Assembly: GCA_965603825.1 (NCBI GenBank) | Contig: CBFDEM010000047.1 | Span: 682,001-746,000, forward strand | DNA length: 64,000 bases | Source: Blepharisma stoltei ATCC 30299 | Taxonomy: Eukaryota > Protista > Ciliophora | Direction of reading: 5' to 3' | Part shown: positions 15,130-39,000 of the stretch, piece by piece | Layout: each line of letters begins with the position of its first letter | How positions within the stretch are numbered: position 1 is the stretch's first letter | The notes under the pieces: generated by a model | Database searches by the model: none | Seen by the model: the letters and a program-made list of their open reading frames with translations, nothing else | Told to the model about the DNA's origin: nothing | Position numbers and translations under genes: made by a program

Positions 15130-16032
15130 ATAGTACTGGAAACTATAAAGCTTAGAAAATGAGAGAAATGAAGATATTGATTAATATAATATGAATTTAA
15201 TTGGTAAAAGTGTAAGGAAAACTGAATTATATTAAATGAATGCTTTAGCAAGAGATATATATAGTGGCCATATAAGTTTAAAATAGGATGACATTTGCTA
15301 GTATTATTTGAATAGAACATGTTTGAAATTATATTGTTTTTTATTAAAATATAGATCCAACTTCTTTGATAAATCGCACTGTATCATGCATAAAAACTAG
15401 ACAAATTAACTTGCCTAAAGCACAAACTTATATTATAAGTAAAGGATCTGGTAGATAACTGATATATTTGATACTAAAACACTTAAAAAAGTTAAGAACC
15501 TAAGGGCAGTAATATTACTATATTTGAAAAAGATGCCATACTTGAAAAAAAGAAGAATAGTCAAAATGTATTTTAAAAAATGACTTCAATTATAATTTGC
15601 GATTAAATATTAAATTTTAATTTTAAATAAAAATCTACCAAAAATAGTTTATTTTAATGTCATGATGAATTATTTAAATATTTTATTTAGCTATTATCAT
15701 AAGCAAAAGTTATTTTCTTTAGCATTAAGAACTTCTTATATATTTTTAATTTTAAATTTTTACTAATAGCTCTTATGCTTATGGGATTGGGGGTTCTTTA
15801 ATATCTGAGGTCTACTATAACTTAAATTGATGCAAGTAATATAAAAATGGCTTGATGCAAGATGTGAATGAATATGATCTAGCTAATAATAATTCATTTA
15901 TAAATTTTTAAAATATACTAAAACTTCAATATATCTTAAGGAATTGAACATAGATATGGATATTAATCCTTATAAAGATTCAAAACTTCAGCAAAGGTAA
16001 AAGGTAGTATAGTTCGCACTATGTGCAATTCA

Positions 16033-16172
16033 AATAGGGAGCAGAGTGATTGAGCAGAATAGAGGTAGCTCATCTGCTAACTCTCAAATTGGCAGATCTA
16101 ATGATACTGCAGACTTATTAACTCGTGCTAAGAAATAACTTTCTATATTGTTTCATTATTCTGCTCCCTATT
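16033..16172 (+). ncRNA. Candidate structured RNA: 33-bp imperfect stem closing a branched head
   Basis: 16033-16065 pairs with 16140-16172 (24 Watson-Crick, 7 G-U, 2 mismatches, no A-C). Internal hairpins 16072-16097 and 16099-16120. Family not recognised. Confidence 0.5.
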
Positions 16173-16322
16173 CAGAGCTACAATAAGGAACGATCTTGAA
16201 TAATTCAAGTAAGATCATAAAATTTGCAATTTCGAAAAATATAAACTTTCACAAAGCCTATAAGAAGAAGATTTCTAAGTAATTATAAATATCTTATCAA
16301 TTATTTTAAATCATTAATCTAT

Positions 16323-16721: not shown

Positions 16722-17172
16722 GGGTAGAGATAAAAATGTTACATTTATACACAAAATTAGGCTTGGTTCAACAGCAAATTGTAATTAAATTTAAGATTTA
16801 AGCATAGAAGGCTTTATATTTTAAGGCTTTTAAAAAGCTATAAAGCTATTTGGATAGAGATAAATAAAAACAATTTTATTTTATTATGAAATTGTTATGA
16901 AGAAACTGTTTATAGTTCTTATCTAAATTTTAAATTCATAATTTTAATCATATTTGTGTATGCACTTCTTATTAATTTGAAAAGAAAATACTTATAATTA
17001 ATAATTTTTGAACTTGTCAGCAGCGTTCAAAAATAGGAAAAATTGCTTAATTTCCTATGGCTTAGCATTTTTGAGTGCTAATGCCATTATACTCTTTTTG
17101 TCTAAAATACAATATTTGAAATGGCTCCATTTATACGTTAAGTCATTTCACTGAAAAATTTATAAAATAATA

Positions 17173-26042: not shown

Positions 26043-27349
26043 TTATTATAATTATTATTGATTTTTACCATCCAATATTATAAAATTTTTTTTCAGCTAG
26101 TTAATATGCATATTTAATCTAGAACAAAAATAAAAATTCCATTTTGAGAAATCGAGAACAGAAAATGAAAAAAAATTCTTACTTCGTTTGGCAAGTCTAT
26201 ATATTATAGACGATTTTTATCCTTGAGTGATAGCTAGTAAATGCTCTATTTAATTATAAAAATAAAAAATATTTATTTAGATGAAATTGAAGAATTTTAG
26301 GCTTCATAAATTAAGAATTTATGTTATCTACAAAATATATGCATTAAAATTAAACTTTTCAGATACTTAAGTTAAAAGTTAATAGGCATTGTTGGAGATT
26401 TCATTGCAATCACTGTTATTTTATTATTACATTATTTTAACACCAATTTTTCAGCATTTATCTCTTTAATTATTTAAACTGAATAAATAATTTTTAACCA
26501 AGTTGAATCTTTTCTCTATAATCTTTCATTCATTCTGCAGTTCTCTGTGAATATAATACAATTCAGGCACCATTATTTTTAATAATATTGTCAAGAATTC
26601 CACATTTCTCTAATCAATTAAAAAATACCTCATCAGATCGAAAGGCAACTGATTTATTTTTCCTTCGCTTAATATTTAGTATGGATTTTCAAACCTCATT
26701 CTACCCCTTACTCTTGCTCTGCATACTTTCAAGCATTGACTGCTTTCTCTCAGTGTCCAGTGTGCCATTTGCATCATCTTGATTTATTATCAATTTAACT
26801 TTTTATATAAAAATAGATTTTTAATGCTTTATTGAGAGTTTATTTCCTAAAAAAGTTAAAATAGTAAAATTTTTACTTTTTTAGTAAAATCCAAATTTTT
26901 CTAGCAAAGAAATTTCACGGCTTTGCATTTTCAGCAGACAAAATAAAAATAAATAAAAAATGAAATCGGCTCCTAATTATAGTTTAGAGCATAAAAGAAT
27001 GCAATATTCATCTTTAAACTTAGCCTTACATTTCTAGAACTTTATTTTATTCAATGTGTTTTATAAATACTTTAGTCATCAAAATGAGCTTGTTTTATTC
27101 TAATCATGTATGGAAAAAGTTCAATTTGTAGTTTGTCTAATTCTAAATAATCACTGACATTATTATTAATAAAAAATAATATAAGAAGATTAAGAATTCA
27201 AATCGTAAATAATATTTCAAATTCATTTTCTAAAAAATTAATATTTAAATATTTTATAAATTAATCATTATCGAGCTATAATTTCTATCTATTTGGTTTA
27301 AAATTTAATAATTAAATATTTTCAATACAATAAAATTATGCCTTATTAT

Positions 27350-35130: not shown

Positions 35131-36366
35131 TTAAAATTTTATTTTCTTCCTGATTTCTTCTGCACATGAGTTTATGTCTTTAGTTTCTTGTAATTTAAAT
35201 TCATTTTCAGAAAATCATGGATGATTCAAGAGGTCTCTTGCATTTGCCCTAAAATTTTGGTCTCTCTGCAGAAGATTAGAGACAAAGGATAAGCAATTCT
35301 TTGTAAGGTTCTTCCAAATAGACTCTTGGAAAGCTATTTTGCAGTCTTTATTTCTTAATAAAATATCACGAGTTGTTTTCCCTCCAAATGGCATTTTCCC
35401 AGTTAATAAAATAAATAGGACAACTCCAGCGCTGAACAGGTCTACTTTGGTTCCATATGGAATGCCGGTTATTATTTCAGGTGCTATATACCCAGGAGAC
35501 CCACACTTTTTGTAAAGAGATCCAATGACTTCTTCTGACAGCCCAAAATCGGCTAATTTGAAGTCGTAGTCATTGCCCTCAGAGACCATTAAAATGTTCT
35601 CAAGCTTTATATCTCTGTGAACAATATTTAAAGAGTCCAGATAACTGAGGACACTCATCAGCCTATAGCTAAGCTGAAGTATTGTTTCTTCAGTGAACCT
35701 TTTCCTCTTTATTATTCTTGTAAAAAGGTCTCCTCCTTCTGCGTAATCTAGGACGAGATAAATATGAGTCCCACTCTCATAAACTCTATGAAGCTTCAAA
35801 ATATTTGGGTGGTTACATTGCCTCATAATTTTTATTTCGTTGGTTAAGTTTCTTAAAATGTCTGGATTTTCTACTAATTTGATTTTTGTGATAGCTTTAA
35901 TCGCGTATTGCTTATTATTATTAGCTCTTTCTGCTAGAAAAATCTGAGCAGATTGGCCTTTTCCAATTGGTTTTATAAAATAATAATCATTTTCTATATC
36001 TGTCATTATGCACAAGTCAGACATTTTTTCAATTCAAATTTCAAGACTTTTGGTGTCGGGCACGTAAAAGTCCTTCATGTGGCCGATATGGCCTAGCCTG
36101 AAACCGTAGCGAGGAGCATTTCTGCTTTCTTCAACAAAAGGCTCCATAACCTTTCATTCAAGAGGAACCATTTTTTGAGTATTTTGGTTTGATTTTATTA
36201 GGAATTTTGAGGTCAAGCTATAGCTGCCTTCCTCAAGAATTTTTGACTTGCCCACCCTATACAAATGGCCATTATATATTTCATTTTCCCCATTTTGGAC
36301 GTTGGTAATCCAAAACTTACAAGTTCCTTGGGCAAGACTGTCGATATTTTCGAATACTGAATTCAT
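35131..36366 (-). CDS. PH-CaMK kinase copy 6, 411 aa
   Basis: ATG 36366 (MNSVFE); TGA at the kinase C-lobe HPW; TAA 35131-35133. Confidence 0.9.
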
Positions 36367-36801
36367 TATATTATAAGTGATCAATACATTTACTGTACAA
36401 AAAAGCTAATTAATCAGAAAATGGCAAAAATAAAATAATTTTAGATTGAAGATTCTTATAGTATGCATAAAGACTAAAATGGTAACTTGGAACTGAATTT
36501 TCAATTTTTATTTCAAAGTATTTATATCGAAATTAACGATGTCCCATTCCTAAAAGCTCAAGAAATGAAGCCATACACAGTTAATTTTATTATTAGAACT
36601 TAGATTTTTCTAGAATCCATTTTTTATTCGAAATTTTCTAAAATTGATTAAATAACTAGAGTCTCAAAATTGAATCTAATTTTAAATATTTTTATGCATC
36701 AGTATCAATTATGAGTTTTTATCTGCTAAAATCGAAATTATTTTTCAATTTCTGCTATAGTTATATTTTTGAAAATTCTTGCTTTAATATTAAATGGAAT
36801 T

Positions 36802-37391
36802 GAAGCTGGAAATTACCAGTGTTGAGATAGCAGAGGCTGAAATATTTTTTATACAAAATATTTCTAAATCTGTTCTGGCTGGTAATAAAATTGCTTTTGT
36901 AGTTTTATTTTATAAAAATGGGTAGCTAGCTGCTTTATTGATCTAAAGGTGAATAATGCTAGGCATCTTGAGTTAAAATTGGAAAATTTGCATATTTAAT
37001 TTTTGTCTCTTGATTATTAGGCTAGATTAGCATTTTTCACCCCTAAACGCTTATTGCCTTAGAGGGAGCAGAAAGTACCTTTTTCTACAGCAAGAAAAAG
37101 TTCGATTAACTAGTTTTACTTTTATAATTTTGGAGCCTATAAAATTGGAGAGCTGGGTGAAAATCCCAGTTTCTTGCTAGGCAGATGGCCTATTCGAGAC
37201 CTTTGATGGCCTACCATTTTCAGGGTTTTTAACTTTGGATAATTCTGAGCCTTAATATTTCCATTTTTCATAGTGAATCGTCTGTCATATATAAAGGATT
37301 TTCGACCCTTTTCTGTGGCCTAATCCCACATCAGGCGTTCCAATGAGTGTTTAGGAAATTGGTTCTAAGTGTTTATCTGCCAGACTTTTTT
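36802..37391 (+). ncRNA. Candidate ~590-nt multi-domain structured RNA ending in a T6 run
   Basis: Four consecutive nested helical domains (36812-36886, 36914-37084, 37150-37172, 37180-37381) with many G-U pairs. No long ORF. Family not recognised. Confidence 0.5.
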
Positions 37392-38163
37392 ATTTGTCTT
37401 TTAATCATTTTATCTTTAGTTTATTTCTAAAGTTAAATAATTTGGAAACTCTAGAAAGATAGATTTTATATATATATGATAACTAAAAATATTTGTGTCT
37501 AATAGCATTATACAGAGCATACCTATTAAAGTAAATCCAAAAACTAATTTTTTTTTAACTGTCAAGCTAAAAAATGAATGTATTTTCTTTAGCAGTTATG
37601 CCTAACCGACAAGCTTAAAAATTAAAAGAAGTTTTAATATATTCAAATCCATGGAAAATTTATTTTTACTTTTTTATATTTATTAAAGTCAGATGCTCGA
37701 AGTGCCATTTTATATTGGTTTATTCAAAGCAATTTTAAACAAATTTAAAAATGAATTAGAATTATTTTAGATTAATCAGTATAATACAAATAAAAGATTA
37801 ATATACCCAAGAGCTGGTATAGTTTATGATTTAGCTATATACATTGTCTTGAGAAATTTCAGCTAGAATGGAATCTTAAAATAATTTTGCAAGTCTATCA
37901 TATTTATTTGGCACAAAAACCAATTTCTTATATTTCATTAAAACTGAAGCAGCAGGCTACTCTTAAAGTTAATAAATAATTGTTCTCATAATTGATATTT
38001 AAGCAATAATTTCATATAGAGAACTAAAATTTAATAGAAAGCATAAACATCTAAATAAAAATATAATTATCCTTCTAAATATTTTGTAATAAAAGGTAAA
38101 AAATTTATTTTGTTTATAACTCAATCTAGAGCTATTTATTACTCAAATGTTTTTAAGTCAAAA

Positions 38164-39000
38164 ATGAATCAAGATGACACGGTAAAAGAACTTCGCAGAA
38201 GGCAACAGCAATGGATGAGGGAAAGAGACATTGAGATGGAGCGGCAGAGCTTAGGCCTTGAAGGTCTATCTCCTGGAGATCTTGTCAACCAGCTTACAGA
38301 AAAAATTACATCAAAACTCCCATCTTCTTCAAAACAGCAAAAAATTGACAAATCAGTTGCAGATGAGCTAGAAACAAACACATGCTCTATTTGCTTTGAA
38401 TTAATGCTGCCAAAAGAGCATGCACCTATTATTCTCTTTCCATGTGGCCATACTCTTTGCAAGCTTTGCATTGAATCCCACTTTAAAACAGCCCGACAAA
38501 AAAACTGTCCTCTTTGCAGATGCAAAGTCGACAACCAAGCAGTCAACGTCTCCTTACAAAATCTTGTGGTGGTCTTTGCTAAGCAAAAAAATTTGTCAAA
38601 CCAAATAACTCAAGAATCCCAAATTTCCAGTCAATCAGATAATGGAGATTACACAGAGCAGCTACAAATGTACAACTTAAGATGTAAAATATTATATGAT
38701 GAAAAAACAGCCACCGAGCAACAAATTTTTCAGCAAAAACTGCTTATTGAGGACCGAGAAGCTGAAATCACAGTTTTGAAGTCTGAAGAAGACGACGCGC
38801 TTATGAGGATGCGAAAAGCTGAAGAAGAGCTGGAGCTGATAAGAAAACATCTCAGGAGAAGCAATGACGAAATTTCAAAAATTCAACACAAGTTAAATGA
38901 GTTGGAAACCACTGTGACTCTTATTGACGATACATTGAAATCCGTCGAAAGAGAAAGAGCTAAGGTCACAACACTAATTAATATTAAAAAGAATTCCTAA
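38164..39000 (+). CDS. C3HC4 RING-finger + coiled-coil protein (putative E3 ligase), 278 aa
   Basis: CSIC...PCGHTLCKLC...CPLC followed by a long coiled coil; first ATG 38164. Confidence 0.9.
   Translation: MNQDDTVKELRRRQQQWMRERDIEMERQSLGLEGLSPGDLVNQLTEKITSKLPSSSKQQKIDKSVADELETNTCSICFELMLPKEHAPIILFPCGHTLCKLCIESHFKTARQKNCPLCRCKVDNQAVNVSLQNLVVVFAKQKNLSNQITQESQISSQSDNGDYTEQLQMYNLRCKILYDEKTATEQQIFQQKLLIEDREAEITVLKSEEDDALMRMRKAEEELELIRKHLRRSNDEISKIQHKLNELETTVTLIDDTLKSVERERAKVTTLINIKKNS

Follow-up and report, generated by a model that had tools for sequence, protein, structure and literature searches.

The U3 RNA pairs with the 5' ETS and the 18S rRNA through separate short segments, and the 26T RNA found in the ORC of Tetrahymena derives from 26S rRNA. 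This 26T RNA recognises rDNA by Watson-Crick pairing (PMC4287346), and another Tetrahymena RNA, TtnuCD32, is a ciliate-specific non-modifying snoRNA taking part in pre-rRNA processing (PMC6315972); together they are ciliate precedents for unusual RNAs pairing with rRNA or rDNA. The yeast snR30 (U17), a 606-nt RNA with several hairpins, makes a bipartite pairing with the pre-rRNA without modifying it (PMC7601244). Telomerase RNAs have been reported in heterotrichs (PMC8287931). In the macronuclear genome of the heterotrich Blepharisma stoltei (41.46 Mb, 64 contigs, all searched here), an element of 590 nt located in a stretch of 64,000 nt (hereafter the window) carries on its plus strand two short segments complementary to the probable first nucleotides of the pre-rRNA.

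The element is like snR30 in its size, its several hairpins and its bipartite pre-rRNA pairing, and the ANANNA hexamer following its first hairpin (D1), together with an AGA placed three bases before its T tract, loosely recalls the H and ACA boxes of that RNA. Such box words are AT-rich and occur at 36885 and 37072 (ANANNA) and 37382 (AGA), so that the hexamer at 36885-36890 is a possible but weak H box. Unlike snR30, the element has no complement to the ES6 of the 18S rRNA; it has no exact m1 and no ACACCA (the m2 fitting this 18S), the look-alikes being in the wrong order, and the U17 family (RF00045) gave no match in it. Furthermore, the guide would loop out while the target is continuous, the reverse of snR30. 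With U3 the element shares complements to the pre-rRNA leader and the 18S rRNA as separate short segments, but it lacks boxes A/B/C/D and would target the very 5' end of the precursor instead of sites within the ETS. TtnuCD32 is a U14-like box C/D RNA acting at 5.8S, unlike the element, a distinction made from its description. The 26T RNA targets the rDNA replication origin, whereas the element is a separate single-copy locus complementing the probable transcription start. Heterotrich telomerase RNA (PMC8287931) is likewise a structured ciliate ncRNA missed by Rfam, but the element has neither a CCCTAACA template nor an upstream element. By analogy, the element would work like U3 or snR30 while being a member of neither family.

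Table 1. Position and strand of the element, of its predicted parts and of the flanking genes in the window.
Feature	Position	Strand	Remarks
Kinase gene copy 6	35131-36366	-	Flanking gene, transcribed away from the element; context only
Element	36802-37391 (590 nt)	fold favours +	In the 1.8-kb spacer between the kinase and RING genes
D1 hairpin	36812-36886		Folds equally on both strands; followed by ANANNA hexamer 36885-36890
D2 inner stem	36948-37041	+	P 0.68; its 3' strand masks the second leader complement
Rod	37020-37388	+	Strand-specific; paired ends, two branched heads; GC 0.39; T6 tract 37386-37391
Weaker second leader complement	37031-37044	+	Complements +1..+6 and +13..+20, with a target bulge of 6; -20.4 kcal/mol
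Long-range helix 37042-37055/37342-37355	37042-37355	+	14 bp, P 0.94-0.97; strongest in the rod, missed in the preliminary description
18S complement	37051-37061	+	11-nt Watson-Crick match to 18S rRNA 1366-1376
Possible compact box C/D unit	37203-37248	+	C-like TTGATGG, 14-bp guide 37214-37227 against 28S 1177-1190, D box CTGA
Leader guide B	37256-37269	+	14-nt perfect complement of probable pre-rRNA +13..+26; unpaired 0.63 in the rod ensemble
Looped-out segment	37270-37298	+	29 nt between the guides in the predicted duplex
Leader guide A	37299-37310	+	10-nt perfect complement of +3..+12 (majority rDNA allele), then G-U (+2) and U-A (+1)
RING-finger gene	38164-39000	+	Flanking gene, starting ~770 nt after the element; context only

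The spacer holding the element is framed by two divergent genes (Table 1). BLAST and two single-sequence covariance models found no second match and no paralog in the genome, the lone weak match being coding, and the element is thus single copy. All six frames were negative on the codon model, and a search for a small ORF or pseudogene gave neither a Pfam match nor a genomic paralog; both identities were rejected. Among the 16 spacers of the window, the 369-nt rod stretch described below is the non-coding stretch with the highest GC content (0.38-0.39) and the lowest MFE. The GC content here is 0.29-0.39, versus 0.44-0.53 in six known ncRNAs measured from the same genome. The IES-containing assembly shows extra insertions at ~36459, ~36650 and ~37417, which are probably IESs, and leaves uninterrupted the 770 nt holding the element; the latter, being retained in the MAC with IESs on its flanks and none inside, is not itself an IES. 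The germline insertion at 37417, 26 nt past the T tract of the element, measures 570 nt and has C-rich terminal inverted repeats and an internal palindrome.

The preliminary description had drawn four successive nested domains (D1 to D4) on the plus strand. The 14 helices that it named are all present in the sequence (107 pairs, of which 18 are G-U, and one mismatch), but they do not make up the predicted fold, as the structure forced into the four domains reaches -134.2 kcal/mol against -153.9 kcal/mol for the MFE, that is 20 kcal/mol worse. In the full-length plus-strand ensemble, the top and middle parts of D1, the inner stem of D2, D3 and the TGTGG/CCACA hairpin are recovered (P 0.68-0.98); the closing helix of D2 falls to P 0.02, and the closing helix of D4, its three arm helices and two of its three short hairpins to P 0.0. 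The D4 closing helix has a P of 0.9 when this domain is folded in isolation. The ensemble favours instead a long-range rod extending from 37020 to ~37382-37388, with a z of -3.08 on the plus strand versus -0.26 on the minus strand, and several mutually exclusive folds are possible for the element. Over the whole 590 nt, the stability supposed for the plus strand was found against shuffles (z -2.82), and the minus strand was nearly as good (z -1.93). Taken alone, D1 folds on the two strands (z -3.5/-4.1), and D2 (z -1.3) and D4 (z -1.5) are weak. The G-U deviations advanced in favour of the plus strand represent 16.5% of the MFE pairs versus 16.7% in shuffles, and the argument is therefore without weight. 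Since boundary-optimised local z values of -4.1 or lower are also reached in four other spacers of the window, folding alone is suggestive and not decisive, and the modelled stability of the element does not appear exceptional on its own. The part that stands is a GC island, non-coding and present in a single copy, whose plus strand forms a predicted rod at 37020-37388.

Elsewhere in the window, the spacers 16778-17162 and 26667-26942 have a local folding z of -4.5 to -5.0 and no Rfam match, and a long, near-perfect hairpin at 15967-16216 has a local z of ~-5 on both strands and has the 10-mer AGGGAGCAGA in common with the element. A kinship between this hairpin and the element was rejected, the other 35 genomic copies of AGGGAGCAGA being in long ORFs; one shared 10-mer is expected by chance, so the sharing is probably fortuitous.

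The Rfam search of the element returned no match, at E 10 or at gathering scores, and agrees with the earlier statement that it is not RNase P, MRP, SRP, U3 or telomerase RNA, each of which was found at other loci. The candidate identities were rejected as follows: U6, whose gene lies elsewhere; RNase P or MRP, with no CR-I/CR-V P4 pseudoknot or Rfam match and true genes on contigs C18 and C31; SRP RNA, with no helix 8 motif or Rfam match and a true gene on C18; U3, with boxes A, C', B, C and D lacking and two true genes elsewhere; telomerase RNA, with no upstream element (USE) followed by a template that spans 9 nt or more of the CCCTAACA repeat; and U14, with no Rfam match in the genome and its A domain missing from the element. 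Over the whole genome, U14 (RF00016) and U17 (RF00045) gave no match above noise, and these processing snoRNAs are either diverged or missing.

Termination by Pol III, also proposed previously, is contradicted by the 16 runs of at least four T on the plus strand, including six internal runs of at least five T; internal runs of four T or more number zero in U6, RNase P, MRP, SRP and the telomerase RNA candidate described below. A USE matrix was derived from seven Pol III-type genes, in which this motif stands 58-65 nt before the start, and no USE was found at that distance before any plausible start of the element. The highest-scoring site (11 bits, at 36540) precedes 36802 by 260 nt, and transcription directed by it would begin just ahead of T5/T6 runs. 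The T runs together with the lack of a usable USE lead us to reject Pol III transcription of the plus strand. The notion of an undescribed, probably plus-strand structured RNA thus survives, through the lack of an Rfam match and the location of the known RNAs elsewhere, whereas the four-domain fold and the Pol III idea should be dropped. In the course of these searches, a strong telomerase RNA candidate was observed on the minus strand of contig C11 (C11:751254-751359 and ~140 nt beyond), with an upstream element at -59, the template CACCCTAACACC, a GC content of 0.53, a length of ~185 nt and a T5 end; the genome paper had found no telomerase RNA candidate with Rfam (bioRxiv 2021.12.14.471607).

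A first scan against one rDNA unit of the genome revealed two neighbouring complements ~350 nt before the 18S. Positions 37256-37269 (14 nt) and 37299-37308 (10 nt) of the window perfectly complement two adjoining stretches within what are probably the first 26 nt of the pre-rRNA. Their target, preceded by a T run and TATATATAAG and conserved from one rDNA copy to the next, resembles the plant Pol I start site TATATAAGGGG (PMC4691072), and it would correspond to +1..+26 of the pre-rRNA, the start position being putative. When the target was the entire pre-rRNA and a match on either strand counted, as many as 24 abutting Watson-Crick pairs were obtained in one of 5000 dinucleotide shuffles and in none of 606 genomic windows of 590 nt, the best of which reached 20. 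None of 16842 background 75-mers paired with +1..+32 as strongly as the element. Genome-wide, the bipartite pattern is found in 11 rDNA copies and at this locus only, a count that shows uniqueness and not significance because the pattern was derived from the element. The pairing is perfect with both guides for the majority allele (7 rDNA copies) and weaker for the variants: the commonest is a C-to-T change opposite G, which keeps a G-U pair, the others lie at the junction or at the outer end, and with the C4 allele, that of the unit first scanned, as target the leader duplex ranks only in the top 3-4% of the background. Co-folding of the element with the leader predicts that the duplex forms, with a net -5.5 to -13.2 kcal/mol.

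The rod also includes a 12-nt complement of the 28S rRNA, and the occurrence of four complements (14, 12, 11 and 10 nt) in one 369-nt stretch is in the top 0.23% of the background. The leader match emerged in the course of numerous tests and relies on a selected allele, and the target and guides are low in complexity, the target being purine-rich; after allowing for the allele choice and for about a dozen analyses, we estimate the probability of a chance match at ~0.005-0.01. Judged from these comparisons, the complementarity of the element to the pre-rRNA appears non-random, as would be the case for an antisense RNA of the processing type. No convincing C/D or H/ACA boxes frame the leader guides in the element, and a scan for H/ACA guides (bipartite pocket 14-16 nt before H/ACA, around a target U) gave best scores equal to or below those of three control spacers. 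As to the rDNA itself, the fifteen dispersed units have an identical 5.8S score and differ by ~9% in the 5' ETS region (two copies aligned), and a sixteenth, divergent 5.8S match lies at C40:9569-9700.

No contig covering 36428-37955 was present in three mRNA-like runs, which do cover the kinase, RING and citrate synthase genes, nor was a minus-strand transcript of the element found in their contigs; such runs speak against an abundant polyadenylated RNA but tell us little about an untailed one, for which they are uninformative. In another Blepharisma the kinase, ABC, RING and citrate synthase genes stay together (the RING protein being 68% identical), and the region beside RING and kinase shows no similar spacer and no fold. 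Beside the RING and kinase orthologs of other heterotrichs, where the neighbourhood differs, no ortholog of the element was found either, which precludes a covariation test. We infer the existence of the RNA, together with its polymerase, its ends, its nucleolar location and any function.

Taken together, a non-coding island folding on the plus strand and a rare bipartite complement to the leader make an antisense helper of ribosome biogenesis the most economical reading, and the explanation that we tentatively put first, with less than even confidence, is a nucleolar antisense RNA whose target is the pre-rRNA leader. The observations behind it are the complementarity and its rarity, the single copy, the non-coding GC island and the plus-strand fold. 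Several other hypotheses have to be weighed. One that is nearly as probable is that of a non-functional GC-rich island, the relic of an old gene, of a transposon, of a tandem duplication or of scrambled rDNA, whose fold and rRNA matches would be by-products of its composition and of many tests. The lack of a transcript in the mRNA-like runs, of an ortholog and of a promoter element are in agreement with it, as are the similar local z of four other spacers, the mutually exclusive folds and a weak self-similarity of ~225 nt (p 0.02-0.03), and the dispersion of the rDNA units at 16 loci makes stray rDNA pieces conceivable. However, such an island leaves the 14+10 abutting match as a rare event, and it bears no coding, Pfam, paralog or MITE-family signal. 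Two findings speak against a simple rDNA relic: the two pieces are without rDNA similarity up- or downstream, and the rRNA-like words lack co-linearity; a relic of the rDNA promoter was rejected on the same lack of flanking similarity. The self-similarity fails a local test and is equalled by 3 of 11 control spacers, and the case for a ~225-nt tandem duplication is weak, its halves having no common fold. A MITE/Merlin (IS1595) relic was rejected as well, with no TSD, no second TIR pair in the genome and no transposase similarity.

A weak self-similarity with a period of 165-240 nt is seen in the spacers at 15326, 19501, 32401 and 52301, and is possibly a nucleosome-scale periodicity of composition. 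The 19-mer 37044-37062, which coincides with an arm of the best helix, gave 43 matches in a metagenome scan, 42 of them like the end of one bacterial IS1595-type element; they come from lake and peat metagenomes, have no similarity past the 19 bases, and are judged to be due to chance.

It is unlikely that the locus gives rise to a long structured ncRNA, or an RNA precursor, whose function is a different and lineage-specific one, the leader match being incidental. The highest GC content and lowest MFE of the 16 spacers would fit this hypothesis, and so would a plus-strand-specific rod whose ends are paired and which precedes a T tract; in Tetrahymena, T tracts follow monocistronic snoRNA genes and unassigned ncRNAs of ~210-285 nt exist (PMC3273799). 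On the other hand, the GC content (0.29-0.39) is lower than in the six known ncRNAs (0.44-0.53), no expression was seen in the mRNA-like runs and the leader match is left unexplained.

We consider it improbable that the element hosts, or is processed into, a compact box C/D snoRNA of the ordinary kind at 37203-37248, directing 2'-O-methylation near 28S C1180. The C-like box, the 14-bp guide and the CTGA do stand in canonical order, a layout arising by chance about once per 75 kb (5 in 377 kb), but the C box ends in G, the D'/C' boxes are poor and degenerate, a terminal stem and an Rfam match are lacking, no paralog with the same guide exists outside coding DNA, and the other 540 nt would be unexplained. 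By eye only, a possible box C/D layout (ATGATGG ... CTGA) was also noticed in the kinase-Snf7 spacer of another Blepharisma. Very improbable, finally, is a DNA element of the minus strand that acts not as RNA but through binding sites, Pol I initiator-like or related to an origin, which the rDNA initiation region also has: the minus strand does hold sense copies of +3..+12 and +13..+26, and CATTTT, present three times here, recurs upstream in the rDNA, but there is no rDNA promoter similarity upstream of the piece (score -7 vs a shuffle mean of -2), the motif is interrupted by a 29-nt insert, CATTTT is a frequent word (107 in the window) and no minus-strand transcript appears in the mRNA-like runs.

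Under the preferred reading of an antisense nucleolar RNA, the locus would produce from its plus strand a single-copy non-coding RNA of ~370-590 nt, not made by Pol III and presumably a Pol II transcript or a processed precursor. Guides B and A would pair side by side with the first ~26 nt of the nascent pre-rRNA, looping 29 nt of the RNA out in a three-way junction, and this binding would open the rod in which guide A is otherwise paired. The second leader complement and the 11-14 nt complements of 18S and 28S could provide further contacts, in the manner of U3 and snR30. Most likely the RNA would chaperone or time 5' ETS processing; alternatively, the same complementarity may be used at the Pol I start, where the RNA would pair with the non-template strand of the DNA. 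A limited literature search, which does not establish absence, returned no report of an RNA pairing with the extreme 5' end of pre-rRNA. It is conceivable, though rather doubtful, that the element represents a new class of ciliate nucleolar RNA devoid of C/D or canonical H/ACA boxes, whose bipartite guide clamps the first 26 nt of the pre-rRNA and in this way links the initiation of Pol I with 5' ETS processing or with the selection of one or another of the dispersed rDNA units. If real, the proposed RNA would add a new step to the early ribosome biogenesis of a deep-branching ciliate, and would give a handle on how its 15 dispersed, slightly different rDNA units are used.
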